Assembly: GCA_029953675.1 (NCBI GenBank)
Contig: JAMWBK010000010.1
Coordinates: 310,001 to 374,000 of the forward strand
DNA length: 64,000 bases
Direction of reading: 5' to 3'
Source: Rhodosorus marinus CCMP1338
Lineage: Eukaryota > Plantae > Rhodophyta
Shown here: positions 15,870 to 64,000 of the stretch, in pieces
How the letters are laid out: every line of letters starts with the position of its first letter
Position numbering within the stretch: position 1 is the stretch's first letter
Position numbers and translations under genes: made by a program
The notes under the pieces: generated by a model
Seen by the model: only the letters and a program-made list of their open reading frames with translations
What the model was told of the DNA's origin: nothing
Database searches by the model: none

Positions 15870-16540
15870 AGTTCAACCCAAGAGTTGCCTCTCCACAGCG
15901 TGCAGTTAATGACCGCGAGAGCTTTGTTCAGGGCGGTGGGGTCAACAACAACTTTATTCAGGGCCTATATACCCCGAGGAACGGAAGATGACGGAATCGT
16001 CCGAGCCCTGGGCTCGGAAACCTAGATGCCTGGTGAGGCGGCGAAGTCTGCTTTGTACGTGCTCAAGTCGTCTGCATGTTTCGAACGCCATCGGGACAAA
16101 AGGTCCTCTGGGTCTGGAACGGGCTCGTGACTACGACATCGAAGAACCGCGTCCTGTGCTCCGCCTGAATATCTGGACGGTGGGCAGTTCCTCCTTCATG
16201 GATCGTGGTTCAAAACGTCCTCACAACCGCAGTCTCTCAGCAGCCTCGCGACGGTTTTCACGAGCTCGTGATGTCGGTGGATGTGCATTCGTGTGCAACG
16301 GGAGCAGCGGTGGACACAACTTGTCCCGTAGATATCGTGCAATATATCCAGCAACCTGAAAACAAGGCAAAAACCGCCACGCAGTTCAGCTTGTCACCAT
16401 CTTCATGAGCAAGATTGTCTAAACTTTCAAGTGTCCGACAAACCAAGCTTCGGTAGAAGTTTTGAGGGTTTAAGGGAAGTCCTACCCCAATCTCATACTC
16501 CTTGAGACCAAAGCATCGATCTCTTACACACTGCAACTAG
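15870..16540 (-). mobile_element. Degenerate relic of an RLE non-LTR retrotransposon (C-terminal endonuclease region), related to the family at 51409-58596
   Basis: Manual minus-strand translation across frameshifts and stops gives RHHELVKTVARLLRDCG (~16230-16276), HRPDI (~16168-16182), FFDVVVTSP (~16120-16146), FVPMAFET (~16077-16100) and INCTLWRGNS (~15881-15910). These are collinear with RHDEICRELARWLR, RPDI, LDVTVVSP, FIPIAIET and INRQLWRGNA of the young element. Confidence 0.8.
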
Positions 16541-17495
16541 GATCCCACTGTTACTCGCTACATGCAATTGTAGCGAGTACCAATGGGATGGTCTCGGGGT
16601 CTTTCAGGATCCAGTCAATAGCTCAGGGAGAGTTTGGTGCGCGTACACGTTCGCCAAACCAAACTGTACTCCACGGGACCTTCGTGCCTCTGCTCCAGCC
16701 TCTTCCTCCTCATTTTGTTTTGGCCTACAGACATAGAAGCTTTTTCCGTCCCAAGTTTCTTGCAACTCGGTTCCCACTACCCCTCCAATCTCGCGCAGCT
16801 ACCAGAGCTCTTGAATTATACTTGAAACGAATAACATAAAGCGTAATTTTACATTATTTCTGGAAAACCGAAGAGAATGTTTGGATAAAGTTTAATAAAT
16901 ACATGTCATTTATTATTAATCATCATAAATATTATGAAACAAACAAAATGTTTTCTGTTTTACTTATTCAATATGCATCGTCGACGAACCCCTTGTACAG
17001 AGCAACGCTTTCGAGCTCCCAATAAATGTTCAAAAATCGAATACAGGTTTACGTTTTAGTACGAGATAGTACTCGTACTACCCTAGCAAGCTAAGGATTT
17101 CTAACTATATGTTTACTAATTAAAATATAACGATATTGATCTCATCCTTTTTTCGTATTTTTTATAATTCCTGCTATGATCAATTTTTGTTGTTTTTGTT
17201 TTTGTTTTTCGCCTGTAATAATGGCCAACCTATGTGGCCTTAGAAAAAGTTTTCGTTATAGGAAGTTTGCTTGTTGTCGCCACTCTCCTACTAGTTTTTT
17301 TTTCCGAATTATTTAGATGATGTCTTTTCGCGTGTAGGAGGGCTTTTGATAAAAGAGGGATTGGATTGGACTGGGAAGGGTTGGGTAGGGATGGGCGGTT
17401 GGTTTGAGGTAGGGGGATGGTTAGGGGAAGGATATGAACATTGATGAGGTATTGGAACATGAAATGAATTAAGATATTAGTATTGAATAGTAGGT

Positions 17496-20400: not shown

Positions 20401-22056
20401 GGAACACACATTTGGATACCTTGGTCACGAGGAGGTTTGGAGAGACTCTGGAGCAATGAGCCCCGAAGATGTGATGAGTTTGGACGAGTATTGTATAGAT
20501 CTTTTCGTGGAGCTGGTCCCGTTTCAGAGCTCGTTGTCGGGATTCAACAAGTGGGTCAAGAATCCGAAGTATACCCACCTCGCAGAGTGTCCCGATGAGG
20601 TGGACGTCCCAGGACTTGACACTAGCGATCCTCGCGGAAGAATGAGCTTGTGTGCGGTTGACCCTAAGAGCATCGATTTTATTACAGACTTGTACGAGCA
20701 GCTCCTTCCTTGCTTCTCTTCTTCTCAACTTCACGTGGGACTAGATCGCGCACTTGATCTAGGCCGTGGAAGGTCCGCCAAGGAAGTCAGTTCGAAAGGC
20801 GTGGAGACCGTAATTGTCGAGTATTTGAGAAAAATTTGCCACGAAGCGAACAGTCATGGAAAAACTACTGTACATTTCTGGGCTGATGCATTTGGAAGCA
20901 TGCTCGACTACGGGGGTGATCTGAGCGATTTTTCGATGCTCCTACCGGAGGGGGTTATAGCCGTCGAGAGAGGCACCGAACACGACCACCCGTACGATTC
21001 GCGATGCTATCGTCTGTCTTCTATTGGTGTTCCCTTCATGGTGTGTGCTTCCACGTCATCCCAAAATTCGTTTGCCGGAAGGGTATCAAACTGTTTGGAG
21101 AACATTAGGAGCGCAGCGATAGCTGCTGTCAGCAACGCGGCTGTGGGCATGATTATATCGGATTCCGGGGAAAACGGCCACTTGCAGCCGCTTGTCGCGG
21201 CCTATCCTGGGTTTATTGCAGGTGCTGGTGCGGCTTGGAACTGCAACCAGGCGTTGCACAAAACGGATCGCGATATGAGGAAGCTCGCAGCATTGTTGGA
21301 TTCTCATATTTTTATGGATTCAGAGGATACAGCAGCGGTCGGGAGCGTTCTCGTAACTGTTGGGGACCTGCATCTGGTTGCGGAGGACCGCGAACGAGAC
21401 TCGGTCAACTCGACCGCTGCTAGCGTCGTTGGTTATTCCCGACTGTTTCGACTCCTAATTCACGACGGGGATTCTGCATCTTTAGCAGGCCTGTCACCGC
21501 CCGGCATCCAAAGGGCTCTGAATCGCGTTGAGAAGTACGTCAAGCGCAATGTAGTTGTGAAAGCAACAATGGTCTTGGGCCCTCAACTGGTTCTCCACTT
21601 TTCTTGGCTACTGACTAGGGCGCTAGAATTGCTGAACGCCTACCAGGGAATGGCGGGTAGAATTGACGTGGAAGAGGTGCGATTGATGGTGGAAATGCTA
21701 CGGCTTTGTCTGCGGATTGGTACTTGCGTAATCATCAGCAATCGACAAGGGACAGAGGAGTTCGCTCTAAGATGGGTAGGGCAGCACTGGAAGAAATCCT
21801 GGAACGATCGAACCTCTCTAATGTGATCTGTTCTCCTCATCGTGCGAAGCTTGGAGATGGACAAAGATCGGACCTGTGTCTAGGGCTATTGCACTGTATA
21901 GATATGCAGAAGTACATATGGGGTAAGAGAAACCGGCTTGCAGGTTTTGAGGGATCGTGGGCTTGGTTGGAGCCAGCGTTGCTATCTCTTTCGGCAGGAT
22001 TACCGCATCTGGAGCAAACAGTCCAAGAGCGTCGAGAGATTGAGTGGAAATTTTAG
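17496..22056 (+). CDS. Ankyrin repeats + long disordered linker + GH20-fold (hexosaminidase-like) domain with degenerate active site; about 1370 aa spliced
   Basis: ANK motifs (TALHAAAKCGHVDIVRLLLSEGAD, TGLHWACAYG, SPLNEA). GH20 domain-2 motif EAYKLTV..EVSIVGSDPAG-LFYG; catalytic-barrel motifs DWP..RSVMLDISRGKV, NQVQLYMEHTF. Proposed introns 19044-19146/19149, 19358-19448, 20094-20177, 21535-21618 and 21776-21849 give a 4122/4125-nt open frame. Confidence 0.85.
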
Positions 22057-23403: not shown

Positions 23404-24411
23404 TTAGTACAAGTTTCCCTTGATTCTCTGCTCCTCCTTGCGTAACTTGATCTTCTCCTCGGCGTTAGTCAAAAACTTGACAACGGATTCGTACGCAAGG
23501 AACATAAACGCTGCGTTTGGTACTGTCCGAAGCATATGGGCTTCGATACCGGAGTACAACCCTCTCACGCCCTCCTCCATGAAGATAACCCTCAAGCTCT
23601 GTGCCATGCCTATGTATTTGGGTTGCATGCCCTCCGGTACCTTCTCGCGCAAGCGCGTTCGAACAACCTCATGTGGATAGGTCATTAGCGATGCGGTCAT
23701 TTTCGCGCCAGCAGCAGCAGAGAAAACTTGCATGCCCTTGAGTTCGGCCTCTGGATCTATGGCTCGTGCTCGCTCCAACATCTCTGTCTTGACACGCTCA
23801 TATATCAGAAACTGGATGATTGTCTCAGAAACACCCCATATAGATGCGCTTAACCCTTTGTAGAAACCGCCGACTCCCTCATTGTTCCAAATGACTGAGA
23901 TTACTTCACTATAAGAGCGGTATGGATTCGGAGTACCAGCTGCCAACTGGTACCTTGTCTTAATCATCCAGACAGGATTGGTTGCAACCGCAGACCCAAT
24001 CCCTGCGCTCGCTGCGGAAATAATATGAGTCCCGGGAGAATTTCCAAGAACGGGCTCCATTTTGCTCTTCACCGTCGAGTAAGCCCAGAAATATGTTGCT
24101 CGGGTTGGAAAAATTCCAAGGACAGTCGGCAAAAGACCGCGGAAAAATCCAACGGGTCCCTCCTGCACCGCGATCTGCTTTGCGACAATCAAAACTTTGT
24201 AGGAATCCCATACACTCCGCTTGGTAGCATTCTTTCCAGCTTCTGTGCTCGCAACGACAACATTATGCGTCATCGAGCTCTGCAGCTTCGTCTTCAGCAC
24301 CTCCAGCGGACATGTTATTGTTGCAGCAAACGAACCTGCCAGTCCTCCCGCGATGAACGAATACGCTTGCTTGGGCTTTGGTTTTTCCTTCCGGTTGGTA
24401 GCTGTCGCCAT
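23404..24411 (-). CDS. SLC25 mitochondrial carrier, pyrimidine nucleotide carrier type (Rim2/SLC25A33/36-like)
   Basis: Three carrier repeats: ITCPLEVLKTKLQSS, TNPVWMIKTRYQL, TYPHEVVRTRLRE; LRTVPNAAFMF. Single 335-aa ORF. Confidence 0.9.
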   Translation of the reverse strand: MATATNRKEKPKPKQAYSFIAGGLAGSFAATITCPLEVLKTKLQSSMTHNVVVASTEAGKNATKRSVWDSYKVLIVAKQIAVQEGPVGFFRGLLPTVLGIFPTRATYFWAYSTVKSKMEPVLGNSPGTHIISAASAGIGSAVATNPVWMIKTRYQLAAGTPNPYRSYSEVISVIWNNEGVGGFYKGLSASIWGVSETIIQFLIYERVKTEMLERARAIDPEAELKGMQVFSAAAGAKMTASLMTYPHEVVRTRLREKVPEGMQPKYIGMAQSLRVIFMEEGVRGLYSGIEAHMLRTVPNAAFMFLAYESVVKFLTNAEEKIKLRKEEQRIKGNLY

Positions 24412-47897: not shown

Positions 47898-49302
47898 ACC
47901 AAAATCCAAAGAAACTCACTCTGAAAGAAATATCAACCAATCTTCCATCATACCAAATCCATGTTGCTGAGAACAATCTCTTCCTCTGCTTAACCACGAG
48001 GGGTTCGAATTGAAGCCTTCCGCAACAAGACCCTACTGAACGCCCTCCTGCCTTCGCTCAGGACTTCTAATCTCGTTACTCACCAGTAGTTCATTCACGA
48101 ACACGTTTGAAAACATCCAATGCCGAGCGCCAATCTCTTGTCTTCGCCCTGCAGTTCTTGCCAAGCTTATCCACAAAGACTTTGAAAAACCTCCACCCTG
48201 TCCTTCCTCCTTAAGGCCCCAACAAGCCCGCTGACTCCTCTCAATCCCGTTTGAGGTTAAGCTCTAAAAGCTCTGCTTCTTCCTCTCACGGTGTTCTTTT
48301 CTTGTGCTTAATAACTCAGGAAGACGCTGCGAATCGCAACTGGCCTCCGTCTTCTTCACGGACCTTTCGCCCATCTAAGCTCTCCTACAGGACTCAGTTC
48401 GCTTGTATTTCAGGTCTTTGGTTCTTCTACGAAGGATGAATGCTGATCAAGCTGCCACACTACTTTGCCAATGTAGCTCTGAAGATAACTATCTCAGGCG
48501 TCATACCTCACCGCGAGTATGAACAAGTCTGGAAGTCTGCTTGTCAGTTGCGCTTGTGTGCGGTGAACTCCTTGATCTCGAGTCCATCTCTGAGGCCGTC
48601 TCCCAGTCACTTGGATGAGGATCTTCCTCAACCCCATGGTTTTGACTCGTCTGATTCTGACCCTGCCCCAGGTCGGATCTGTGTTCCCAGACTTCGTGCG
48701 GTTTCGAGTGCAATGGCTCTCGGGTAGATTGGGATTGCACTGGATCTACTTGGATAGCTTGAGCTTCACTGCAAGCCGCTGGATTCGACACCCCCCCTGA
48801 AGTACGTTCCGAGTCGAGTCAAGACGATGTAGTCTTCCTCGAAAACATTGTTCTGTTCTTTGTCTCTTCAGCTGGGGACAGCGAGAGTGGCACCTGCTCA
48901 GGTGGATATTGGCCCAGACATACGATATTGGCCCAGACATACTTGACAGATGGAATCTAGTTCACTGGCTTGAAGACATCATCATTATAGTGAGACCTTG
49001 GATGGCAAAGAACTATTAACCGTTTCTGAGAAAGTGCATCGTCGCCGAACGTGTCGCATGGTCGGACCTTTGTAGTGGTGTTTTCCGTTGGCGGGCTCGA
49101 TGGATTCGTGTTGTCGTCCGTCTTCCAGTTGTCCAGTTCGCAACTGACAAAACTTGCGAAGAAAACCACTAAATGGAACTTTACCTAGTCTCGTACTGGA
49201 TCTAGTACTTCGCGGGGACATTGTCATATTGCAGATCTATCGCTCGTGAGCGTTTGCCGCTAGACTGGCGACCTTTTGATCGTCGGTATCAGTTTAGACT
49301 GT

Positions 49303-49965
49303 TCACAAGCTAACGCTGTCAATGACATCTAGCAGGGTCTGAACTTCGTGATCGGTATACGCGACGAGATGTACACTGACGCCTTCGTAGGCATGTTTAA
49401 AGATCGAGCTTACGCCGATTCTGAGAACGTCATCGAGGCCACGGCTTCCACGATAAACCCCAGCGCTGATAAGCGGAAATCCGATGCTCTTCAGGTTCTT
49501 CGCTTTGCAGGCTTGTAGAGCCGTAGCATAGGCGCTTGATAGCAATGAATCGGCTTCACGGGTCTCAACGACGTTATAGTTCGGTCCAACAGAGAGCACA
49601 ACATGCTGGACACTCAGTGTACCGTACTGACCTTGAGGGGCTGGCCCGACGACAACAGACTGACCTACAGGCACGCGTACCGCAGTCCGGGCTTCTACTA
49701 TAGGGATTTGTGCGCGAGCCGCTGCAAGCTCAGGACCTCCTCGTCTAGTAATGATTCCGTCGATTCCTCCTCCAGTCAGCGCCTGTTCATTGGCAGAGTT
49801 CACCAACGCATCCCCTCGAAAGTCGGCCACGGATCCTTGACTCGCGTACAAGAATGCCGAGCGTGCGTGAATACCTGGTATGCCTATCTTTTTCAGTACC
49901 TGAAAACCGAGATCTTCTGACATTGTGTTAATTCCTCCAAGGAAGCGCCGACAGAGAGAGCCCAT
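49303..49965 (-). CDS. Macro domain protein (MacroD/YmdB-like ADP-ribose binding/hydrolase), intronless
   Basis: GDALVNSAN..LTGGGIDG..ITRRGGPEL, VVLSVGPNY, SIGFPLISAGVY. Confidence 0.9.
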   Translation of the reverse strand: MGSLCRRFLGGINTMSEDLGFQVLKKIGIPGIHARSAFLYASQGSVADFRGDALVNSANEQALTGGGIDGIITRRGGPELAAARAQIPIVEARTAVRVPVGQSVVVGPAPQGQYGTLSVQHVVLSVGPNYNVVETREADSLLSSAYATALQACKAKNLKSIGFPLISAGVYRGSRGLDDVLRIGVSSIFKHAYEGVSVHLVAYTDHEVQTLLDVIDSVSL

Positions 49966-50136
49966 ACCATCGCCGCCTGCCAGCAGAATGTCTCAAACCT
50001 ACCTGAACACAATCAGACGCAATATGCACAGTCGATCTCGTTCTAAGCACGAAAGCTTCGGGAGAGTCGACCTCGAGCTCTAGGGGAACTGGACGTCAAG
50101 GCAAGGTCTCGATCAGAACTATCATTGACGGTTTCA

Positions 50137-50217
50137 GACGAATCGTCCCAAAACAAATGAGGGCGTTCAGTGCAGCAAGAGTCAATCAAGCTTGAAGAAG
50201 ACTCAGACTAGACTCCA
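50137..50217 (+). repeat. Left-side copy of the ~170-190-bp tandem repeat found at 58600-59130
   Basis: Ungapped 81-nt alignment with 59050-59130 shows 13 mismatches (manual count), e.g. shared GCGTTCAGT and TTGAAGAAGACTCAGA(C/G)TAGACTCCA. Confidence 0.9.
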
Positions 50218-50299
50218 GGAATGAGGGCATTGGATGGTGTCAGGTTGCGGCTGGTGATGATTGATTGGATTTGCGATACAGACCCTTTAGATCGATGCT

Positions 50300-51280
50300 G
50301 AGGACTGTTCTGGGGCTCCAAGGAAGTCAGAGTGGCCTCTGAGGTTGGCTGGTTGAGTTTGATTGAGCTTTGGAAATGGAGCAATGGAGGGATCCAAGAA
50401 CGGGCCAAGGAGGCTCCGATTTGGGGCTCCAGATGAGTCATTTCAGGTGGCTGGAAAGTGCTTTGAAAAGGGGTCGAAGGAGGTTCAAAATGAGGGCTCA
50501 GATGGGGCTCCAAGGGGATCGAAAGAGGGTCCAAAAGAGGGCTAATTTGGGTCCCAGGAGGCCCTTCAAATGGTGGCTATGGATTGGTAGGAATTGATGA
50601 TTTGAGGGTCATTTTTCCAGATTTCTGTCGATCAGGGGTCATTTTTGGACATTTTTGCAAGTTTAGTAGGGAACAGCGTTTTCACGTTCACTACTAAATC
50701 GTTCAGACCTGTGTAGGTACCGGGGCAAAACGCAATTTAGTACTGTACAGCCCTTTTTTTTGCACACGAGGTATCTCAGCTGTTTTTCGAGATCCGAAGG
50801 GGTCCGTTTTGGGGCTCCAAAGGGGTCGAAAAAATTGGGTGGCTGGTGAGTGGTTTTTGAAGGTCTATTTTGAGGGCTCAGAGGGGTCCTTTTTGGGGGT
50901 CCTCAGGGGTCCGATTTGGGGCTCCAAAGGGGTCTCAAAGAAGGCTCCAAGGAGGCTCCAAGAAGGGGCTCAGATCGAGATCTCAGAGGTCGCAGGAGAC
51001 CGTTCGAGGCTCCAGATTTTCGAAGGAGGGGTTGGGGCTGAATGGGGTGGCTGGTTGTGAGCTTTCGTTGACGCTCTTTGGATCGAAAGGGGCAAAATGA
51101 GGGGATGTGGCTGGATAAATATTGCTTCGCAGGGTCTCTTCACTACTGATTCAGATTTGTTCACTACTAAAGTCTTCAGAAGAGGGCACATTTATTGCGA
51201 AAACAAGCGGGTTTACCCGGTACCTACACGGCTTTTTCAACGACTTTTATGTCTATGCTGAGCAACGTTCACTACTAAAG
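50300..51280. repeat. G-rich degenerate minisatellite with ~40-bp inverted repeats and repeated GTTCACTACTAAA; possible non-autonomous DNA element
   Basis: About 9 GGCTCC motifs and several GGTGGCTGG. IR arms 50695-50733 and 51207-51249 share a perfect 14-bp core GTGTAGGTACCGGG / CCCGGTACCTACAC. GTTCACTACTAAA at 50686, 51159 and 51267; near-perfect hairpin 50662-50698. Confidence 0.6.
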
Positions 51281-51408
51281 TTGACCAATCAGCGCCATAT
51301 TGGGCGAAAAGGGGGCGAAGAGGAGGGCTGGTTTAGGGCTAGATATACCTAGCACTACATGTAGGGTATATAAAATGCTAGCCATTCTATGAGTCAGGGT
51401 CAGGGGGG

Positions 51409-52058
51409 TCATCACTGCCCAACATCAACTGGACTGTGGCAACGTAGGCACGACGAAATCTGCAGAGAGCTGGCACGGTGGCTAAGGCGATGGAACTTCA
51501 TGGACGTAGAGCAAGAACCTGAGGGGTACTTCGAGAACTGCGACCTGATATCGTTGCTAGGCATCCGAGGACCAAACAAAGGTATGCGCTGGATGTGACG
51601 GTGGTGCCACCATTACAGGGAAATTATTTGCGGCGGAGCCAAGATGATAGCGGATACGCGGCGAGAGCTGCGGAGAAGTGGAAAATCGCTCACTACAAGG
51701 AAGCGATGGTGGTCGAGAAACCGGATGATAAGTTTATCCCGATAGCAATAGAGACGTTTGGGCGTACGGGGCAAATGGCACAGGAGTTCCTCCGGGACAG
51801 CTGCAAACACTTACTGCACAGGAGTGAGGAGCTGAGAGACGTGAGATCGCAGATAAACCGGCAACTATGGCGAGGTAACGCAGAGATCGCACTAGGCGCT
51901 TTGCGCGTGGACCAGTTGGAGAATCCGCTGGTGCCTGTTTTTTCTTTTGAACGTAGCATGAGACCCCGGTAGCGGGGTTCCAGTAAGTTTCTCCCTAGAT
52001 AGGATTAGACGCAGTGTTGCGCTGCAGTAGGCAGCTGCCCAGTAAAGCTTACGGTTAC
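51409..52058 (+). mobile_element. 5'-truncated, frameshifted copy (copy 1) of the RLE non-LTR retrotransposon: endonuclease region + 3' UTR
   Basis: Nearly identical to 55933-56589. A 7-bp deletion (ACGGACT, between ACT microrepeats) near 51539 splits ORFs 51389-51598 and 51595-51972. Confidence 0.95.
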
Positions 52059-52619
52059 TTGAGTAACAGGTCCCATAGTCAACAGGATGATGAATGGCAC
52101 GAGATCAAGATCACCAGATAATCATAGTGCGAAAAACGTTGTAAGGCGCCTCCAAAAGTCTCTGTTAGCTCTGCCAGAACTTCCAGTTCCAACGATACTC
52201 GGTATAAAACTATTCTGCCAAGTATTGAACAGACTATCCAGTGCAGATTCGACTTTTTGTGGTTTGTCCAGTAAGCGTCCGCTATGAGAAGAAAAGGCGT
52301 GGGGCAACTCTCCCTGGATAAAATAAGTTGCCCAGTAAGCGCTCGTTTTCAATCGGATTAGAGCGATTCTCTTCAGAGGGTGCGCATGGCTGCAGTCTAT
52401 CCAATCGAAGATTCAACTTGGATATTATTGGCGGTCGTTTGCAATGGGAGTCCAGCGATTGTCTTCAGAGGCTGCGGCATGGGTATATACAGCGTAGTGG
52501 TCTGTAAATAGGGGGAGATGGTGGAGGAGGAACTGGTTGAAGGGTAGCAGCACTTACTGATTGGATCGTGACTTTCTTGTTCGTGAACGAGGTGTTGGGC
52601 GGGGTAGGGATTGTGTGAG

Positions 52620-53207
52620 ATGATGAGAGTTGTCACGTTAGCTGTGTATGGCCTGGCTCTGCTGGGTATGGTGTCCGCACAATCAACATGCGCTGATACG
52701 CCTGGGTTCGTGAGATTTCAATATGCAGGAAACGGCACCGGTTTTTGGGCGAATTTGGAAGGGAGGAACGGGACGGTGTATGGAACTGTCTTTGTGACTG
52801 TGGCGGAGAGGAAAGCGAAGAACTGTTTTCAGGCCGTTTTTGAAATTAACGGAGACGATGTCGCTCTCCTGAGGCTCAGGGCAGGAATTTTCGCGACGAC
52901 GGACGCTCCTACTGGCAAAGACAGGTTCACGAGGAAAAAGCGAGTTCGCCAGGTCGAACTCCCTTTTAGAGTTGTTGGGGGCGCCTTATACATCTGTCCC
53001 TCAAGTATCCCAGCGGAAATAAGCCCAAATTGCTGTGAAAGACCCAATTTGGTTTTATTCGCGACTGCCGTGATTACCAATGGCGATGAGTCTCTGCGAG
53101 TGTATATGGTACACAACCAAGCTACGTCAAATTCGTCATGCATAACGATGAACTCGGAAAAGCCGTTCCGACAGGCCTGCCTTCTACCGATTGCCTGCCC
53201 TAGATAG
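52620..53207 (+). CDS. Small secreted cysteine-rich protein of unknown function
   Basis: Signal-peptide-like MMRVVTLAVYGLALLGMVSA-Q; 8 Cys in the mature part; N-glycosylation sequons NGT (x2) and NSS; intronless. No family recognised. Confidence 0.75.
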   Translation: MMRVVTLAVYGLALLGMVSAQSTCADTPGFVRFQYAGNGTGFWANLEGRNGTVYGTVFVTVAERKAKNCFQAVFEINGDDVALLRLRAGIFATTDAPTGKDRFTRKKRVRQVELPFRVVGGALYICPSSIPAEISPNCCERPNLVLFATAVITNGDESLRVYMVHNQATSNSSCITMNSEKPFRQACLLPIACPR

Positions 53208-53263
53208 GATTAGACGTAGTGTTGTGCTGCAGTAGGCAGCTGCCCAGTAAAGCTTACGATTTA
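53200..53263 (+). mobile_element. About 65-bp extreme 5'-truncated insertion of the retrotransposon 3' end, with CCTGCC target-site duplication
   Basis: CCCTAGATAGGATTAGACGTAGTGTTG(T/C)GCTGCAGTAGGCAGCTGCCCAGTAAAGCTTA matches the ends of copies 1 and 2. CCTGCC at 53194-53199 and 53264-53269. Confidence 0.9.
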
Positions 53264-53483
53264 CCTGCCGTTGATTTTGTCGCATTCAGTTTACTCCATA
53301 AAAGACGAATGCACTTTAAGATGTTCTTTTTCAAAAAAAGATTTTCTGGTTCATTCAAATTTTGTTTATAACTTGAAAAAAAAATTCAACGGCCTGTCAG
53401 CGAGTTTTGAGCCCAACCATCTATGTATCCGTTTATCTTCCTTCCATCTCTCAGAGCTTACCATCCTGATCGGTGGGGAATCC

Positions 53484-56400
53484 ATGACTTGCATAGTCTG
53501 GGGGTACCCGGTTCCCACACGGCGATTTGTGCCACGCGGTCAGGTCCATACATGGAGCTGCCTCTTCCGTGCTGCATTAGAGCTCTCTATGGACAGCACC
53601 GCACCAACAAACGCCAGCCTGCTTCTTGTCGGACTTCCAGGCCTTGTCCTTGGACACTCTGCACTTGATGTTGGCATTCAGGTATCGCACGTGCTTGAAG
53701 GAGAATTCTCTACGGTCTGGAGCGCTCTAGAGGACAAGGCGTCTATGCTGTCGCATACTACCGCACCGCAAGGAGCTGAAGCGGTTCGACGGCAACATCT
53801 CGGGCGCCACAAGCGAGCGTTGAAACTAGCACACCTTGGCCTTTTTCAGATGCAGCTCGGAGCCTACAGGCCACCGAAATGGCACCTTTTACCGCGGCTA
53901 CGTGGAGACAACTACAAGCGCTCTTTCCCGACCCGGCGGAAGGTGACTTACCAGACGAGATTGCACAAGCTCTGGAATCTTTGCTCGCTCTGAATACCGA
54001 AACACTTAAGCGGCGGTGGGATTCAAGAAAAGCGGCCGACGAGGGCCTCATGTCGATCGTGGCACGTCTTCCTCAGGGCAAGAGCCCAGGCCCTAGCGGT
54101 CTCCGCGCGGAACACCTCCAAGGTGCAACTCAACAGACGCAAGTGGCGTTGATTCGTGTATTGCGACAACTGGCGACCGCTCCGGAGAAATTTTCCCCGG
54201 CTCTGACCCGCGCCCTTCGCAGCAGCCGACTCCTGCCGTTCGCGAAGCCTAACAAGGGTTCAGTGCCGCAGGAACATCCCGGAGTTCGCCCTATCGGAGT
54301 ACCAGAAGTTTTGCGCAAGGTAGCAACGCAATGGACTCTTCACGCGGTTATGGACAGGGTGCGTGAGCTCCTGGTACCCTTACAACTGGGTATTGGAGTA
54401 AGTGGCGGGTGCGAACGCTCACTTCACGCGATCCAGGCCCATTTGTCATGCGAACCCGATTCGGTGGTCCTTCGACTAGACCTGGAGAATGCCTTTAATC
54501 GCATCGACCGACGCCTTGCCAAGCAACTGGTGGACGAGCACTTCCCGGAGCTTGCACCAGTGTATAGACTTGGCTATGGAAGCAACAACGCGGACTCACC
54601 GACGCTCTGTGGCTGGCGATCTTCCCCTGGACAGAACGAAACCGACACCTCTCGCCTGACACTCCACGCAGCTACAGGAGTCCAACAGGGAGATCCACTG
54701 GGGCCGGTGCTACATGCACTATCCCTGGCGCCCTTTCTAAGAGCGTTGCGAGCCAAGTTCCCCAACGAAACGATTGTTGCTATCCACGACGATATCACGA
54801 TAGTCGGGTCGCTACAAGCCGTGAAGGCATCCCTGGCATGGGCAAAAACTGTGCTTCCCTCTCTTGGAGCACGCCTGCAACTCGGCAAGTGCACTGTGCA
54901 CGGGCGAACACTGACTACCACGCGAGTGGTCAACCACGAGATTCCTGGAGTGCAAGTGACCAGAGACGGAGTCACCATCCACTCGATACCGATAGGCAGC
55001 CGAGAATATATCGAACAGGAGTGCCCTGGGCTGCAAAATAAGCACGAGAAACTCTTTGAGGAAATTGCCAAGCTCCCACAACCGGAGCTTACGACGCAAA
55101 TTGCCCTCTTCAGGTTCTGTGCGGAAACGCGGCTAGACTATGTTCTACGATGCCTCGCATACGAGTTTGGAAGAACTCTGGCACGCGAGGCGGATGTGAT
55201 GACCAGATATCATCTGGAAATTCTCTTCGGAGGCCTCGCTACGACAGCTGTAGAGGACGACGAGTACGCAGAGCTGATCTCGGACCAAATCGCTCTGCCC
55301 TGCCGCTGGGGAGGGTTGGGTTTCGCTGCTCGAAAGCGCGTCCAACCCATCGCGTTTTACTCGTCATGGAGAAACACCTTCCGGAACAATGAAGATGAAT
55401 GGCCATACCTGACTGAACTAGAGCGGAAGGTTTCGGCAGAACGCTCACCAGACACATACGAGCCAATGGAGCAACGATGGTCGACTTCACAGCTGGCGGA
55501 CCAGATTTGTGCATCGTCGCGAGCAATACAACGGAGGCTCAGACCAGAAACTCCGCCACGGATCTTGGCACTGACCACTCTGCAACAACCGCGCGAAACA
55601 TCTCTTCGAAGCGCACCGGGCGAGACTGCAGCTTGGAATAATGGTTCAATACAACAAACCCTCTCTCGAGAGGCACACCATTGTGCATTCCAAAGGTTGG
55701 TCACCAACCCACGAATCTCCCCTGAAAACCGTGCTCGGATACGGTCCGCCGCGGGATCCGGGTCGGGAGTCTGGCTGCGTGAAATACCAACGCTGACACC
55801 GAAAAAATTGAGTGCGGTTGAGGTGCAGGTAAACGTTCGACAACTGCTGGGGCTGCCAATTCCGGGATTGCGGACCACCGAGAAGTGCACTAGTTGCCGG
55901 AGTAAACACGGAAGGACTGGGGTACAACGGTTTCACCACTGCCCAACATCAACTGGACTGTGGCAACGTAGGCACGACGAAATCTGCAGAGAGCTGGCAC
56001 GGTGGCTGAGGCGATGGAACTTCATGGACGTAGAGCAAGAACCTGAGGGGTACTTCGAGAACTACGGACTGCGACCTGATATCGTTGCTAGGCATCCGAG
56101 GAACAAACAAAGGTATGCGCTGGATGTGACGGTGGTGTCACCATTACAGGGAAAATATTTGCGGCGGAGCCAAGATGATAGCGGATACGCGGCGAGAGCT
56201 GCGGAGAAGTGGAAAATCGCTCACTACAAGGAAGCGATGGTGGTCGAGAAACCGGATGACAAGTTCATCCCGATAGCGATAGAGACGTTTGGGCGTACGG
56301 GGCAAATGGCACAAGAGTTCCTCCGCGACAGCTGCAAACACCTGCTGCACAGGAGTGAGGAGCTGAGAGACGTGAGATCGCAGATAAACCGGCAACTATG

Positions 56401-56503
56401 GCGAGGTAACGCAGAGATCGCACTAGGCGCTTTGCGAGTGGACCAGTTGGAGAATCCGCTGGTGCCTGTTTTTTCTTTTGAACGTAGCATGAGACCCCGG
56501 TAG
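53484..56503 (+). CDS. ORF2: reverse transcriptase + CCHC-like knuckle + PD-(D/E)xK restriction-like endonuclease; one -1 frameshift at 53841-53847
   Basis: RT: PGPSGLRAEHL, RPIGVPEVLRK, QLGIGVSGGCE, DLENAFNRIDR, GVQQGDPLGP, AIHDDITIVG. C-terminal: CTSC..HHC, RHDEI, RPDI, LDVTV, AAEKWKIAHY, FIPIAIETFG, LWRGNA. ORF 53879-56503 plus the upstream part of ORF 53271-53993. Confidence 0.93.
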
Positions 56504-56589
56504 CGGGGTTCCAGTAAGTTTCTCCCTAGATAGGATTAGACGTAGTGTTGCGCTGCAGTAGGCAGCTGCCCAGTAAAGCTTATGGTTAC
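53507..56589 (+). mobile_element. RLE-type (CRE/SLACS-like) non-LTR retrotransposon, copy 2: 5'-truncated, nearly full ORF2 + 3' UTR
   Basis: Contains the RT+RLE ORF. The first 176 bp duplicate 58421-58596. Flanked by TAGTCTGGGG(G)T at 53494-53505 and 56592-56602. Confidence 0.95.
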
Positions 56590-56649
56590 GTTAGTCTGGG
56601 GTAAGCTTACAGTTACGTTGGTCTGGGGTGGTAGTCTGGGGTTAGGGGT
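56575..56649 (+). repeat. G-rich junction repeats between copy 2 and copy 3
   Basis: GTAAAGCTTATGGTTAC-GTTAGTCTGGG-GTAAGCTTACAGTTAC-GTTGGTCTGGG-GTGGTAGTCTGGG-GTTAGGGGT. Confidence 0.9.
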
Positions 56650-58596
56650 TTTGGACGGCTTTGTTTGTGGAAAACGACGGAAAAAGCTGATAAAAAGCTA
56701 CAAGTATGATTGTGAAGGAGGTACGCGGGCCCTACCCCGAGCCTCTTGTGATCGCGGGCCCACACACCTCGGGTACCCGCGAAATGGAGAGGGCGAAAGA
56801 GCTGCTACAAGAGCAGCAGCAGCAGCAGCAGCAACAGCACCAGCATAGGGGAGCAGAACAGGAGGCAGAGAGGAATGCAGAGCAGGCCACAGCAGACCCA
56901 GCTGTCGCCTTTCTCCACCAGCTGCAGAGCTACGACCACTGCTATACCGCCCTGGGAATCGGCCAGTCGGACATCGCCGACTTCTACCAGGCCGCCTTCA
57001 ACCTCTATTCCCGCATCAAATGCTCAAAAGAACTTCAATCAGTGACAGGACGTCTGAATGAGCTCGCCAAAAAACCGCATATGTGGCAAGACGGACGAGC
57101 CACTACGACCCCGCCTCAACCCCCGCAGCAGCACCCGCGGACGGCGGCGGTCAATCAACATGCGGCAGAACCCATCATCAATCAACTTACGGAGGGGACA
57201 GGTGTCCTTGCCTCACTGGACTATGCCACGGCCTTCCCTGTTGCCGGTACCAGCAGCACACGGCCAACGTACGCTCAGAGGACTGCCCAAAGTACTCCAG
57301 CTCGAGAATCAGAGGCAACTCCGACCAGCCGGGCGCCCGGGCCCACAGAGCCAGCAGGCAGCGCTCCGACAGTTGCACGCCACTGTGGGAGGGTCCTCCT
57401 GGGGACCCGAGACCAAGCCGGTACTGGCGACCCTGAGGAATGTAAGACCGCCACGGATGGACGAGGTAGCCCCATCGGATTTCACCACTGTCCTTTGCAG
57501 AGCCTTGGGGATTCCGAGCTCTTATGTGGCGCACGTGGACTTCATCGCTTCCCATGCGTGCTTACTCTGCCATCCGGACGCGATTCCGATTCTACAAAGC
57601 GCCATCTCTCGGGGCGTTTTCAGGACGGGCATCTTCGGTTCGTTCACCCAGAGACACCCCGATCGGCAAGTGACTCTCTACACGGGCCAGGCACTGGATA
57701 CAGACAACCTGTTGGGCTATAATGAACGTCAGCTCATTGCCCCAGCGAATATCGGGGCTCAGACCCTGAAACGGGCGATTGAACAGACTATCCGGATCCG
57801 CGCGAGACTTCGCAGAAGGCAACTCTCGTTCAACACACTCGCAGCGATACACGAGTACCTGGAGAGCAGACTCGGAGCCCTACAAGCCACACAACGTACT
57901 CCAACGGTACCCGGGGAGAGCCCGCAACCCCCAGCGCCTGCAGCCGCCACGAACGCAGACCCTGAAGCCTCGTCCGTTCCAGGGGATGTACAGGCAGACC
58001 GTGGGAGAGTTGACGCCCCGGTTGAGACCAGTGCGACTTCCCAAGTACCTGAGAACGCAGCACACGAGGACAATCCCCATGCGGAGCTCCTCTGCAACCT
58101 TCCGGAGCCACCTCAACAGAAGCGCTCGCGCGTAGCCGCCGATGGCACCGGACCGGATACTGAGATGACTCCGGCAGCCGTGGAGACTCCACAGGATACC
58201 ACTGGGACACAGGTTGCCCTTGACGGCAACCATGACGCGATGGACACGCAGGAGAGCCAGGAAAACCCAGCCCAATAATGCCGAGCAGACGTAGGGGAAT
58301 CAAACGACGCCGCGAAGAGCCTCTATTCTTCTCGGATCGTCAAGACTGGATCAGGCGGAGGAGCGTCTTCGTCGACGACGTCACGGAAGGAGGCAGGCAG
58401 TGGACGCGCCTTACACACTGCCCCGTTCCCACACGGCGATTTGTGCGACGCGCCCAGGTTCACACATGGAGCTGCCTCTTCCGTGCTGCATTAGAGCTCT
58501 CTATGGACAGCACCGCACCAGCAAACGCCAGCCTGCTTCTTGTCGGACTTCCAGGCCTTGTCCTTGGACACTCTGCACTTGATGTTGGCATTCAGG
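56650..58596 (+). mobile_element. Copy 3: 5' part of the same element (5' UTR, ORF1, start of ORF2), truncated at its 3' end
   Basis: The last 176 bp match the start of copy 2 (about 7 mismatches by manual count). Homology ends abruptly at GGCATTCAGG, followed by tandem-repeat sequence. The 5' boundary is approximate. Confidence 0.85.
56706..58278 (+). CDS. Putative ORF1 (gag-like) of the retroelement, split by a +1 frameshift around 57300-57420
   Basis: Overlapping ORFs 56706-57722 (polyQ, helical N-terminus, PTYAQ motif typical of non-LTR ORF1) and 57058-58278 (globular middle, acidic disordered tail). The TAA stop overlaps the ORF2 ATG (TAATG, 58276-58280). Confidence 0.7.
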
Positions 58597-58599
58597 CAT

Positions 58600-59130
58600 T
58601 CAGCCTCAGCCAGTACTATGATCAGATGGGCAGGTTGTCCATCCGCAGAAGTCTGACTAGCAAAGAGCTGGCGCGGGGGTGAGCAGGGTCCCTGACGAGT
58701 CGTTCCTAGACGACTGAGAGCGTTCAGTGCCGACCGAGTCAGTCTACTAATCAGACTTAAGACCCCAGCAATTAAAGGATTCGATAGACAGACTGTCCCC
58801 GTCCACTCGAAATCTGCCGTGTGGCCGAAACCGCTGGACTTGGATGTATACAGGGTCTCGAGACGTCCCGAGACGACTGAGAGCGTTCATCACAGACAGA
58901 CCCAATCTAGCTTGAAGACTCAGACTAGACTCCAATAGCTAAAGGAAGCGATGGACAGGCTGCCCTCTTCCACGGATCCTGACAGAAATCCCAACAGAAA
59001 TCTGCTGTGCTGACGAAACCGTTGAGCCTCGGGTGTATACGGGGAATCTGACGAGTCGTCCCTAGACAACTGAGAGCGTTCAGTACGGAAAGTTTCAATC
59101 TAGTTTGAAGAAGACTCAGAGTAGACTCCA
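58600..59130 (+). repeat. Diverged tandem array, about 3 units of 165-190 bp
   Basis: Unit starts near 58694, 58860 and 59050 share GAC(G/A)ACTGAGAGCGTTCA. Middle parts share GAAATCTGC.GTG...GAAACCG.TG...TGTATAC.GGG. A partial unit precedes at 58600-58693. Confidence 0.85.
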
Positions 59131-59444
59131 GTAATGATAAGCCCGCTCTCTTCGCTTTAGCTCAGTCTCCTCCTCTCTGGGTTGGCGGTCTTCAAGTAAA
59201 TTACTCGAATGAAAAGCGTTGGTTGAACAGGCTGTTTGGGATGTAAAATCTGGAGGGGAGATAACTTTATTGGGTTAGGGTAGGGCATCAAGCAGATGAG
59301 CACAGTGGAAGGCGAGCTAGTTCGCTATAGAGAGGCGAATTCTTATAGTCTCTAGGTTTTGTATTTTTACAAGAACGAATCGAGCTGAGCAGGTTTTTTT
59401 GGAGGAGTTGGATCTCGAGGTTATGTTTCTGAGATTGCACAGTT

Positions 59445-61458
59445 ATGAACGCGGTTGATGAAGAGTACAGTCCGCCGGATGATGATGCCAGGTATGTGGA
59501 GACTGTGAACAGAGCTTTACGGGATGGAGACTCTAGTGGTAGGCATCTGAGAGAAACCTTAGCTCGGGATGAGCTCACTGGGCTTGCGAGAGTGCCCAAC
59601 AGCATTCGGGGCGCGATCTGGAACTTTTTGTTGTTGTCCACTAAGGGCAATCGGGAATTATTTGGTAGTATCAGCGATGAACAGTTTAGAGAATCGGCAA
59701 ATGAAAGCTTCGGAATCATGGAGGAGGTTATGCGGGATCAGTTAGAGGTAGATGCAAAGCGCACAAGGCCGAGCCTTAAGAGATTTCGAGGTCAAGAGTC
59801 CAAGAACGACTTGGTTCGGATCCTTGCGGCATTCTGTGAGAAGGAGAACCTTCGATACGTTCAAGGAATCAATGAAATCGTAGCGATGTTCATGTTGCTG
59901 CAGGACTTGGGCCACTCCCCGAAGATTGTATGTGAGCTCCTTTCGTCGTTCCTTCACGATTTCGCGTCCTGGGATCTGGAATCGTCAGACGAGAGCGATA
60001 CATCTTCACTCGCGTTTCATAAGCTCAAGTACTGTTTCAGATCGTTCAGGATTTTGCTCCAGTACCACGATTCTGAGCTTTTCAATAGGCTCGAAAGGTA
60101 TGCTTGGTTCCATGGCCCACCGCAATAGAAAGCCTCGTTTCCGAAAATGGAGCCTGATACTCCTCTGTCAAATTTCTGCCTAAAAAGCATGGGGCTCGAA
60201 CCAAATATGTATGCCACGAGCTGGTTTGTTACTCTCTTCGCCAGAAACTTCAGCGTGGAAGCGACGTTCGCGCTCTGGGATAATGTGATCGTGGGAAACG
60301 ACCGCTCCGACTTCTTCTTCTTCGCCACTGCACTTTTAGTGTCCCGACGAGAGCTCCTGATGCAAGTTAATGATGCGCATCTACCAGAAGAGATCCTAAA
60401 TCTTCGAGCAGAGACGAAAGGGGAAGTCTCCGCGCTCTGGGCATGGGGAATGAAGCTGAAACAGAACACCCCAAACTCGTTTGTAGACATGCTTTCGAGT
60501 CCACTGACCATGTGCGGCCTCCAGGATGTTCCCGACAAGGATCCCGTTCGTAAGCAAATCCTCCTGTTGGTCATCGTTTGCTGCGACCCTTTCGTATGTT
60601 TTATGACTGGCTCACCTTCCTTACGATTCGGAACTGGCAGTAATGACTGTCAACGTGGATGATATCTTCGGAGACCCCAACAAGCAGTTCCTCATATGGG
60701 ACTGTCGCACGATGCGGGAGTTTGAAAGCGGTAGAATCGCTCGAGCAGCTCATCTGGAGCTCGATGGCTTAAGGTTCGGGTCCCGAGAAGACGCAGTGAA
60801 GGATCTCGAATCGGTAATCGCAAAAAACGAACCCCTACGAATCAGTGGTACGCATGTATGCCTCGTTGGCTCCGGAATCCCCGCAGAGGACGCGTTCGAT
60901 GTGATTCCCGCGGCCACGTGTCTCACGAAGAATGGATTCAGGTAGGTTTTTGCAGCGTTAGACTACCACGCTGAGGTTTCCAAGACCTTGCTGTTCGCAA
61001 TATTTGAGCCTCTGCTTTCTACCTCGTCATTAGATACATATCATTTCTAAAGGGCGGGTTTCCTGAGGCCCTGACCAAATCGCCTGAGCAGGTTACAGAC
61101 CTAAGCCATGCAAAGCTCGAAGCGGGGATCTCGTTGCGTAAGAGACAGGAGGAAAGGAGCCTATAGTACGCAGGCATTGAAAGGCGCCCTCGTAACAATA
61201 CTTTCATAATGACAAAGGGTTCCTTTGATCTCTTCGATTTTGTTTTCAAAACATAGTGCTCGGGAACGTGGTGTGCCAGACGGTGTGATTGCCCTAGTGA
61301 ATCGGACGGACTCTGAAGTTACTGATATGGTTGATAAAGCCAAGGGAACAATTGAGAGGTTTGGTTCTGAGATACGGAGCGCCCTAGCCAACCAAATAGC
61401 CCAGCGCAACAGGAAGAAGGGGGAAGAAGAGTTGCAAGACGACGAAGAAACAGGTTGA
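59445..61458 (+). CDS. TBC (Rab-GAP) domain + rhodanese-like domain protein (TBC1D23-like architecture, no kinase domain)
   Basis: IRGAIWNFLL, LEVDAKRT, YVQGINE, YATSWFVTLF, then WDCRTMREF, HVCLVGSG, GFRYISFLKGGF. Introns 60098-60187 (AAG acceptor), 60550-60640, 60942-61033 and 61166-61256 keep frame. Confidence 0.88.
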
Positions 61459-63537
61459 GGAATGTACCGATAGATACGTCTCCGCACAGACAGAAGCGGG
61501 GATATTGATAGGATGCCTGCAGTTCGCTAGAGGGGCAAAGTCCCTTCGGCGACTCCTCTGGAAGAAGCTCTAGGGCTCTTATTTATTGAGAAGTTTGATA
61601 GCACGCAGCGCGGCCAGCGTCCACGTAGACCCCAACGATTAGTCGGGTGCCTTTCTCAAGGACTCGAGCATAGGACTAAGCACAAAATTCGGTGAAGATC
61701 AGAGTGCCTGGATGAAGCGCAGTACACGAGGCCTAGCAGGATTGGCGATGTAGCAGAATGATTCTGGTAGTAGATCTATGCACGCTATACTTGATTTTGA
61801 GGACGATAGTCCAGAGACGCTCAAGGAAAATGCGGCTGTCCTCTATGCGTTAAGAGCAATTCTAATGGATCACCCTAAACTAAATATTAAAAAGAAACGA
61901 TGAGATACAACGGAGCACTACTGGAGGTCGCGGGGATTTGCCCACAGTCCGTGGTAAAAGGAAGGCGCTAAAAGCTGGACTAACACAATTCCGGGCTCCA
62001 ACTCAGAGATTCCGCGCGGACAGTTTCTAAGATGTTCTCAACAATCTAGACTTTGTCCTGGGCGATTCGAATAGAACATGCAGAGCAAATTAGTGTTACC
62101 CAGAAGAAGTCACTTTCGGACGATGCAGCACAAGCTCAGTAAGCAGAATTGTAAAATGCTCTACAGACTAAAACAATGCCTCTGTCGAAGAATCGTATCT
62201 GAGCTGTTCATGGGTCAGTCGCCTATCTACAGGTAGCCGTACTATACCGTTCAAACGTGTTACTAAGAATCTAACAAAGAGCCGAGAGGCTTCAAGCGCC
62301 TCATAACGGGCTAATGGGTATTTCCTGTCCGCAGGTACCGCTCTATTCGAGGTCGGCGTTCTTGCTGGGGCGCCGTCGACTTCTCGACATGCCTCTACGG
62401 GAGCTTGAGCCCAGGACTAGCCTTCTGTCCATAGTCATAGCGTTGTTAAGTCCTGTCAGGGGTCTGCGACTCCCCGTGGAAACCCCTATCGGAATAAGAG
62501 TTGCTGCGGTTCCGGTATCTGCTGACTACCAAAACGGTCACCAACACATACACTCCCCACACCTCCAGGATGAAATCAAGCGATCACCCACCACACAACA
62601 CGATCCAGGACGTCAAGCCTCATGCGAAAGATTTGAGGGTCACTGCTGATGGTGATACTTTGGTTGGCTCCCAGTCCGCTCCTTGTGGACGTTCAGAAAT
62701 TACTACCAACACGACACGGGGGATGAAGCTCCAGAAACATATTTCATTATATTTTTGAGGGTTTCTATTTTAGGATTCTCGGAATTTAGCCGCTTTTTGG
62801 TGTAAGGACGTTGTTGAGTAGTTTTTTTCGGGAGGGTGTTGCGTTGGGAGGGGACGTGGGGACGAGATGATGACGTACATGAGTGAAGTGTTAGTTTACG
62901 TCCTGCATCGTGATCTTGAAAGAGCAAGGCCTGAGCTTCACCCTGAAGCAATCATCGCGTTTTCGGAGGGACGGTCAATGTTGAAAAGCGTCCGAGAGTG
63001 TAGAAACTCTTTCAACACAGAGGATCCGTCGTGTTGACAGGAGTTTTAGGAATCAAGACTGCGGATTTAGGATAGTTAGTTGGGTGGGCTCACTTCGAGT
63101 TAGTACATTGGACTGTACTTATGAGCATTCAGTAGCAGGCTTTTTGTGTCTCCGTCCAGGTTTCAGCACGTGTACTCCGGATGATTCTAACGGAAAATTA
63201 GCTGAATTTTTTGAATTTTCGTTCGAATGCCCCTACTGACGCAGTCGCAGCTCAGAAGTACAGCAAGGATCGCCTCTAGAGTCCACCGACATCCACAGGA
63301 GCAGCAAATGCTTGTGCCTTGGGTAGGTGGTGGTTCCAGTTGTCATGCTGTGGCGAGGAGCAGGATGCGCTAGTAGTCCAATGAGAGGGTTCGGTACTTC
63401 CTTCTATTGTCCTTCCGAGCTGCTCATGGAAGACGTAGATGATGAGCTGTAAGGTATAATCATAGAACGAGATCTACACGAGCGCTACCAAATGTCATTC
63501 TTCCCCTCCTAATGCGATGAGGTTGACGGAAACGGGT

Positions 63538-63655
63538 TTTTTCATGCTGTACAGCGGCGTCCATGTACCACTCAGCTAGTAGCTCCGCAAGGAAACGTGG
63601 GGTTTTCATGCTTTACAGAACCGTCCATATGCCACTCAGCTAGTAGCTCAGCACC
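63538..63655 (+). repeat. Two direct repeats, period about 65 bp
   Basis: TTTTCATGCT(G/T)TACAG...GTCCAT...CCACTCAGCTAGTAGCTC(C/A)GCA, twice. Confidence 0.85.
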
Positions 63656-64000
63656 TCGGCTTCTATCGCCAGTGGTAGAAAAGGTCATGGAACAGGCAGG
63701 GGCTCCCGACTCAAACAAAGATACTCGGGTGAAACCCCCTCAATCTTTTAACCGCTAAAAAGAGCTTGGAGGTCAATTTAGTCCTACAGTCCTAAACAAA
63801 GGGAAAAGAAGCCAAACCGCGGCGAGAGGGCGACGCTCTGGTTCCCCCCGCCAAAGGCAATCGTTCACAGTCGCATGGAGCCTTGGCCCTTGACGCCGGT
63901 TCTTTCCTACGCTCCAGTTTAGGGTCTACTGGAGCGTATTCGACGCCGCCCGAAGAGTACAGGGCCGACCGGTTACTGCTGCGTTGCTTGGAGCACATTG

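Follow-up and report, generated by a model that had tools for sequence, protein, structure and literature searches.

A LINE family with a restriction-like endonuclease and a recurrent, target-like G-rich motif at its junctions in the red alga Rhodosorus marinus

Long interspersed nuclear elements (LINEs) that encode a restriction-like endonuclease (RLE) are classic site-specific retrotransposons and are under development as gene-insertion tools. Among them, MoTeR, Cnl1 and FoTeR target telomere repeats and are usually put in the CRE group. Most RLE LINE clades are target-specific (PMC4640811), and any target specificity that is added extends what is known of how they recognize DNA. Here, a nest of RLE-type LINE copies was analyzed in the red alga Rhodosorus marinus (assembly GCA_029953675.1). 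It lies in a 64 kb stretch of contig JAMWBK010000010.1 that starts at about base 310,001 of the record and is referred to as the window; all coordinates are window positions unless stated otherwise.

In the RepeatMasker table of the genome paper's supplement, LINEs make up 9.26% of the R. marinus genome, and those labeled CRE/SLACS account for 9.04% (4,036 fragments, 2.82 Mb, families at 1-25% divergence), with the RepeatModeler label LINE/CRE on 97.7% of the LINE base pairs (PMC10250338). The text of that paper is silent on the CRE-labeled LINEs, the dominant repeat class of R. marinus (PMC10250338), and no treatment of red-algal RLE LINE targets was found in the literature searched. The nest is best explained by an R2-like RLE LINE family that integrates via target-primed reverse transcription (TPRT) and prefers a short G-rich site, approximately (G)T-TAGTCTGGGG-(T), which is duplicated at insertion; we hold this reading with slightly better than even confidence. 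The target preference is probably undescribed, in a well-known kind of element.

The copies were defined by self-comparison and BLAST, and a composite of 4,854 bp was built from copy 3 (56650-58599) and copy 2 (53686-56589). The window contains one non-LTR (long terminal repeat) family of about 4.85 kb, with three main copies and two mini-copies. A first-pass annotation of this DNA had described all large copies as lying head to tail in the same orientation, which holds for all five pieces; it had missed the 64-nt fragment. No copy in the window is complete or intact, and every copy is dead. The pieces, including their open reading frames (ORFs) and untranslated regions (UTRs), and the motifs between them are as follows.

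51390-51408, + strand: degenerate double motif TGAGTCAGGG/TCAGGGGGG, abutting the truncation point of copy 1 (TGAGTCAGGGTCAGGGGGG(T) at 51390-51409)
51409-52058, + strand: copy 1, composite 4198-4854 (the last 650 bp), RLE C-terminus and 3' UTR, ending in ...CCCAGTAAAGCTTACGGTTAC
52059-52072, + strand: 3' flank of copy 1, TTGAGTAACAGGTC
53198-53263, + strand: 64-nt 3'-terminal fragment, composite about 4789-4854
53494-53505, + strand: motif M1, TAGTCTGGGGGT, with unique AT-rich DNA before it and copy 2 after 1 nt
53507-56589, + strand: copy 2, composite 1772-4854, 5'-truncated inside the ORF2 N-terminus, ending in AAGCTTATGGTTAC
53879-56503, + strand: 874-aa ORF of copy 2, with the reverse transcriptase (RT) at about 54278-54901 and the CCHC motif and PD-D-K nuclease at about 55886-56250
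56504-56589, + strand: 3' UTR of copy 2
56590-56602, + strand: motif M2, GTTAGTCTGGGGT, directly after the 3' end of copy 2
56603-56616, + strand: 14-nt mini-copy AAGCTTACAGTTAC, an extreme 5' truncation (composite 4841)
56617-56629, + strand: motif M3, GTTGGTCTGGGGT, followed by GG
56632-56649, + strand: motif M4, TAGTCTGGGGT then TAGGGGT, leading into copy 3
56650-58599, + strand: copy 3, composite 1-1950, with 5' UTR, ORF1 and the first 107 ORF2 codons
56706-58278, + strand: ORF1 of copy 3, with one frameshift near 57350; ORF2 starts at 58278

Copies 1 and 2 are 96.7% identical, with a 7-nt deletion in copy 1. In copy 2, ORF1 is missing along with the initial ~47 ORF2 codons, and the reading frame shifts near 53845; copy 3 stops abruptly at 58599/58600, where it adjoins unrelated tandem units of 170-190 nt. 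The shared 3' end is ...CCCAGTAAAGCTTAYRGTTAC without poly(A). Five copies or fragments end in ...GTTAC, and the truncation points are found at composite positions ~581 (in a second locus, L009, described below), 1772, 4198, ~4789 and 4841. No inverted repeat of at least 25 nt and no LTR-like terminal direct repeat was found around the copies in 48000-64000. A common 3' end, variable 5' truncation and no LTRs are the signature of TPRT.

The exact 10-mer TAGTCTGGGG occurs three times in the 64 kb (53494, 56592 and 56632), compared to about 0.1 occurrences expected, and all three lie at element boundaries. With one mismatch it is found at the element boundary at 56619 and at only one other place (6972, minus strand). 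The junction motifs reported by the first-pass annotation could be confirmed at 51390-51409, 53494-53505, 56590-56602, 56617-56629 and 56632-56649. Along the nest the order is motif, copy 2, motif, mini-copy, motif, motif variant and copy 3. At 5' junctions no more than one filler base lies between motif and element, and at 3' ends the motif comes directly after the element, as can be read from the junction sequences (the slash marks the boundary).

5' junction of copy 1: ...TATGAGTCAGGGTCAGGGGGG / TCATCAC
5' junction of copy 2: ...CTTGCATAGTCTGGGGGTA / CCCGGTTCC
5' junction of the 14-nt copy: ...GTTAGTCTGGGGT / AAGC
5' junction of copy 3: ...GTTGGTCTGGGGTGGTAGTCTGGGGTTAGGGGT / TTTGGACGG
3' junction of copy 1: GGTTAC / TTGAGTAACAGGTCCCATAGTC
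3' junction of the 64-nt fragment: GATTTA / CCTGCCGTTG
3' junction of copy 2: GGTTAC / GTTAGTCTGGGGT
3' junction of the 14-nt copy: AGTTAC / GTTGGTCTGGGGT

Copy 2 is flanked on either side by TAGTCTGGGG(G)T, and what lies before the upstream motif is unique DNA and not another element's 3' end. Between copies 2 and 3, two 27-nt units (56576-56629) consist of an element end and a motif each. The element end and the motif do alternate twice, as had been noted before, and the second end was identified as the 14-nt mini-copy at 56603-56616. The accompanying suggestion that the RT had re-primed on the target is weakened by their sequences: three of the 27 positions are not the same in both units, and the CAGTTAC of the second is that of the L009 subfamily and not that of copy 2, which indicates different templates and makes simple re-priming on one RNA unlikely.

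For a comparison with independent sites, about 106 kb of R. marinus DNA was read for the motif, consisting of the window, L009 and a control locus of 21 kb (L011). The homologue search had yielded MMETSP proteins without DNA (80-82% identical), a relative from a metatranscriptome (L001) and an R. marinus ORF1 protein, P0245 (84%). L009 is the locus of P0245 on contig JAMWBK010000007.1, in a LINE-rich region about 16 kb from the contig end. It contains a diverged 3' fragment of ~120 nt ending in ...CCCAGTAAAGGATACAGTTAC (CAGTTAC), followed by GTTAGTCTGGGG and then by a copy starting with TGTCGGGACC..., which begins at about 581-593 of the composite and is 81-86% identical. The 13-mer GTTAGTCTGGGGT thus follows ...GTTAC at two independent loci, and the succession of 3' end, 13-mer and truncated copy recurs with a different subfamily, a different truncation point and on a different chromosome. 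The junction motif is recurrent, as the first-pass annotation had put it, and the pattern repeats outside the nest. In total, the exact TAGTCTGGGG was found five times in the ~106 kb, four times abutting an element boundary (three in the window and one in L009) and once unoccupied. The control locus L011 contains neither the element nor the motif.

The agreement between the two loci bears on the possibility that there is no specificity at all and that the pattern stems from local segmental duplication, long-read assembly error or chance. G-run lengths (GGGG compared to GGGGG) are error-prone in nanopore assemblies, and the region is repeat-rich, with 50134-50224 resembling 59047-59137. However, the window and L009 are unlike in truncation points, subfamily differences and flanks, the divergence among the copies is 3-19%, and the chance of an identical 13-mer at two loci is about 1e-8. 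This explanation is hardly credible.

A distant relative points in the same direction. L001 is a metatranscript contig of 4.2 kb from another sample, with a homologous ORF1 and an ORF2 that is 47% identical. It starts with GGTAGGCGGGGTGAGGGG, read as GGTAGGC-GGGGTGAGGGG. The alignment of its start, TGGTAGGCGGGGTGAGGGGAG, with GGTAGTCTGGGGTTAGGGG contains two mismatches and one gap, and its score is not reached in any of ~27,000 background windows. Its 3' UTR retains GTAGGC..CTGCCCA.TAAAGCT. The observation is strengthened by the independent locus L009 and by this relative.

The start of L001 is also relevant to the alternative offered by the first-pass annotation, namely that the motif represents the 5' terminus of the element itself, kept by template jumping. 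In copy 3, the only full-length 5' end, and at the start of L001 the motif is followed by T(T/G)AGGGG, which fits such a terminus. However, the motif stands directly before copies truncated at ~581, 1772 and 4841 (0-1 filler bases), which lack the first 0.6, 1.8 and 4.8 kb of the element, respectively. A sequence that precedes such truncated copies is not the element's own 5' end, and we consider this alternative very improbable. The true 5' end of the full-length element may instead be the T(T)AGGGG... that follows the motif.

A further relative, L003 (26% identical, from a JGI sample), carries (GACA)n at 1-25 and from 3797-3900 onward, followed by at least five tandem 5'-truncated copies with (GACA)n between each. 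It looks like a microsatellite-specific RLE LINE with the same architecture as the nest in the window. Another candidate, L002 (30% identical), was rejected as evidence, as it is rich in GC homopolymers and uninformative. In the JGI metagenome contigs, no further copies of the family were found by a scan for protein patterns or for the 3'-UTR pattern GTAGGCRRCTGCCCARTAAAGCT.

Next, the proteins were used for the assignment of the element. ORF2 matches Pfam RVT_1 (E 1.5e-9, aa 134-341), and its C-terminus reads C670-x2-C673...H687-C688, RHD, RPD(734)IV and ALD(749)VT with a downstream K; these positions are conserved in an alignment of 29 homologous sequences. The AlphaFold (AF2) model of ORF2 has a pLDDT of 84 and a pTM of 0.85. 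In a fold search of the PDB with this model, R2 proteins were the best matches over ~920 alignment columns (E 3e-21 to 6e-17), followed by LINE-1 ORF2p, while the PDB sequence search with ORF2 gave only weak LINE-1 matches and did not recover R2. The element proteins have no Pfam match to an APE domain. The element is an RLE-type LINE, as had been proposed, with two ORFs, an RT and a C-terminal restriction-like endonuclease. It thus shows the features of the RLE-bearing non-LTR grade (R2/CRE/NeSL/R4/HERO), which are a LINE-type RT, CCHC plus a PD-(D/E)xK nuclease and no APE. Membership in CRE is plausible; the only indirect support for it is the RepeatModeler label on nearly all LINEs of the genome as a whole.

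The stop codon of ORF1 overlaps the start of ORF2 in TAATG (58276-58280), and in L001 the overlap is ATGA (~968-971), which suggests that the two ORFs may be coupled by termination-reinitiation. The N-terminus of ORF2 is predicted to be all-helical, with the 82%-identical MMETSP protein P0121 as a stand-in. Exact look-ups returned no record of the 874-aa ORF2 or the 406-aa ORF1, since the assembly carries no annotation of the element copies.

The position of the motif on both sides of copy 2 can be accounted for by the following course of insertion. The nuclease would nick the bottom strand on the motif's 5' side and the top one immediately behind GGGG(T), by which the 11-13-bp motif would be duplicated on both sides of the insertion. 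Each insertion would recreate two target sites, and later insertions, made from templates of different subfamilies, would land next to earlier ones. Degenerate sites would be used at times, for example by copy 1. The expected outcome are same-orientation head-to-tail arrays of mostly 5'-truncated copies with single motifs between them. A motif that is recreated on both flanks at each event would invite further insertions and would give the observed order of motifs and copies.

The same order could arise if the motif were carried on the RNA, with transcripts that extend past GTTAC, either because they run on into the spacer of a tandem source array or because ...GTTACGTTAGTCTGGGG(T) is their actual 3' terminus. 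The arrays would form when the RT, within a single integration, jumps from one template's end to the 3' end of a second one; no DNA specificity would then be needed. Reverse transcriptases of the R2 type are known to jump between templates and can use RNAs that extend into the downstream target. An identical GT-T(A/G)GTCTGGGGT follows GTTAC in three of the five readable 3' ends, at two loci, and all motifs except M1 and M4 stand directly after an element 3' end. In addition, CCCUAGAU at the start of the 64-nt 3' domain (56524-56531) can form a weak pairing of 8 bp, including G-U, with GUCUGGGG (56594-56601). On the other hand, M1 follows unique AT-rich DNA and no convincing element 3' end, the motif is missing at the 3' ends of both copy 1 and the 64-nt fragment, and the motif-like sequence upstream of copy 1 would be left to be explained. 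The pairing of CCCUAGAU with the motif AGUCUGGG was discarded as evidence, given a z-score of only -1.6 for the fold and its lack of conservation in L001. Overall, an RNA-borne motif appears rather unlikely.

As a separate observation, both mini-copies are truncated near the CCCUAGAU pairing site.

The preference of the nuclease for the G-rich site remains the favored explanation, and a number of findings weigh against it, above all in its strict form. The 5' flanks of the only seven readable insertions comprise four with an exact or near-exact motif, two with a degenerate one and one with none, and three of the five readable 3' flanks have the motif (one with 1 mismatch). These seven insertions lie at 3-4 independent sites, and the independent motif instances are few because adjacent insertions share motifs. 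The earlier description of a similar motif before every large copy holds, with copy 1 having only the degenerate version. Likewise, the matches behind the 3' ends that had been compared to target-site duplications could be confirmed for copy 2 but are imperfect for copy 1, where the flanks TGAGTCAGGGTC and TGAGTAACAGGTC agree at ~10 of 13 positions with one gap; a target-site duplication of copy 1 is doubtful. The 64-nt fragment has no G-rich motif at either flank, and its flanks have only CCTGCC in common. The unoccupied exact motif is found in L009 (14105, minus strand). No Pfam match at E<=1, and thus no DNA-binding domain, was found in ORF1 or in the ORF2 N-terminus (P0121 aa 1-254). The duplication of the motif is inferred from occupied sites. 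Finally, the genome should contain a random 11-mer only ~15 times, compared to the ~2.8 Mb and 4036 fragments of CRE-labeled LINEs, so that a strict 11-bp specificity is insufficient unless self-seeded arrays dominate. Taken together, the RLE LINE, the head-to-tail array and the target-like junction motif are supported, while a strict specificity is not established.

For the identification of the site itself, the junctions were searched for known RNA genes. With Rfam (gathering and E<=5 thresholds) and ARAGORN, no rRNA, snRNA, spliced-leader RNA, tRNA or HDV-like ribozyme was found at or near the junctions. The window as a whole has no rRNA match in Rfam, and the element flanks consist of unique DNA and an annotated protein gene.

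As a special case of the favored explanation, the motif could be the telomeric repeat of R. marinus or a derivative of it, and the family would then be telomere-targeting like MoTeR, Cnl1 and FoTeR. The interstitial nest would in this case have been seeded by short interstitial telomere-like tracts or would represent internalized chromosome-end arrays. With a G before and a T after it, (G)TTAGTCTGGGG(T) has the phase of a slice from a tandem repeat. One substitution (T for A) and one additional G are all that separates it from the experimentally established telomere repeat of Yarrowia, TTAGTCAGGG (PMC6746865). Little is known of red-algal telomeres, which are unusual (PMC7046594), and the L009 copy lies close to a contig end among many LINEs. 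Against this, the window's array lies among genes and ~361 kb into the contig, no tandem array of the motif is present in the 106 kb of R. marinus DNA, A or G and not T precedes M1 and M4, and the version in L001, TAGGCGGGG, differs. The assembly has 12 telomere-bearing contigs; neither the genome paper nor its supplements give the R. marinus telomere repeat. We regard a telomeric origin of the motif as rather unlikely. It is unlikely, too, that the full chain applies, in which the 11-nt TTAGTCTGGGG is the Rhodosorus telomeric repeat or a close variant (Yarrowia-like 'TTAG-TCN-GGG'), the LINE family is telomere-targeting with seeded interstitial arrays that feed the 9% CRE-labeled load, and the preference is old and shared with the 47%-identical family in another organism.

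The surroundings of the nest show further repeats. The nest is located ~361-367 kb from the contig start and is thus interstitial, and the genes around it in the window are ordinary (Macro-domain, NRDE-2 and RabGAP-TBC). A mitochondrial-carrier gene with a single exon is found at 23404-24411. The 91 nt at 50134-50224, left of the nest, are 84% identical to 59047-59137 on its right, and three tandem units of ~170-190 nt at 58674-59102 are related to 50134-50224; copy 3 is cut exactly where the units begin. From this likeness and the tandem units, the element-rich block of 8.4 kb may sit inside a minisatellite or may have split one.

Directly upstream of the nest, a G-rich field of degenerate repeats (GGGGCTCCAAGG / GGGGTC..TTTTGGGG units, GC skew +0.23) extends from 50290 to 51040 and is unrelated to the junction motif. 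The sequence GTTCACTACTAAA occurs four times (0.08 expected), in all cases within 700 bp upstream of copy 1 (50662-50698, 51159-51171 and 51267-51279), and once adjoins GACCAATCAG; a similar inverted sequence is found in L009 at ~19040-19075. This set could be another small repeat or a promoter-like module. Between copy 1 and the 64-nt fragment, an annotated gene for a hypothetical protein of 195 aa (52620-53207) has a signal-peptide-like N-terminus and no Pfam match. Its last two codons and stop come from the 64-nt element fragment, without which the stop would be two codons further on.

L009 contains two additional RLE elements. At 13179-18616, the first family's ORF2 is interrupted by a second RLE LINE family, whose own ORF2 is 31% identical. 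The insertion site lacks the motif, and the 3' end of the second family consists of tandemly arrayed CCAGTAAAG/CCAATAAAG units. There is a third RLE remnant at 20709-21257. In the window, the exact sequence CCAGTAAGCG occurs twice (0.05 expected) just downstream of copy 1 (52268-52277 and 52332-52341). The pair resembles the CCAGTAAAG 3'-end signature of RLE families and may represent relics of the 3' ends of another family. GGGGTT-like units upstream of the L009 fragment had first been taken as telomere-like; the alignment identified them as a diverged 3'-UTR hairpin of the element. In the gene-rich locus L011, an (AACCCC)2.5 tract (TTGGGG repeats) at 16747-16761 is probably due to chance.

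If the favored explanation is true, a motif that is recreated at each insertion would explain how a 'site-specific' lineage could expand to 9% of the genome (CRE-labeled). A telomeric motif would be the first telomere repeat for the Stylonematophyceae and the family a third independent example of telomere-targeting RLE elements, whereas a motif that is not telomeric would make the family an ordinary addition to a well-known class. The findings point to a target preference that is probably undescribed yet not radically new in kind.

Compared to the described systems, the family has features in common with several groups. CRE1/2, SLACS and CZAR likewise combine an RT with a C-terminal CCHC/PD-D-K nuclease and have no poly(A), and SLACS also has two ORFs; their site-specific insertion would be a further likeness. 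In contrast to these, spliced-leader genes are not the target in R. marinus, where no RNA gene can be detected at the site. In structure, R2 (R2Bm, R2Tg) comes closest, with a match that spans all of ORF2 and its nuclease, and it shares TPRT and 5' truncations; a role for RNA extending into the downstream target is a further possible likeness. The R. marinus element differs from R2 by a sequence identity of only 14-16%, no 28S rDNA target, no Pfam-detectable zinc-finger/Myb N-terminus and a separate ORF1, and these last three features set it apart from the R2 clade.

Dong in (TAA)n, Togen in (TG)n, some HERO elements and L003 also target a short repeated motif and form tandem 5'-truncated copies with the motif between them, whereas the motif in R. 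marinus is an 11-mer, present singly or as 2-3 degenerate units, and not a long microsatellite. MoTeR1/MoTeR2 of Magnaporthe oryzae differ in that the R. marinus spacer is a single unit of 11-13 nt not known as telomeric, the array is interstitial among genes, and the element has a separate ORF1 and a red-algal host. The likeness to MoTeR lies in the layout: in both cases an RLE-type RT element builds head-to-tail arrays in a single orientation, in which full and 5'-truncated copies have very short stretches of the target repeat between them, with target sequence at the 3' termini and at some 5' truncation boundaries and with variant target-like repeats at the intact 5' ends (PMC7367193).

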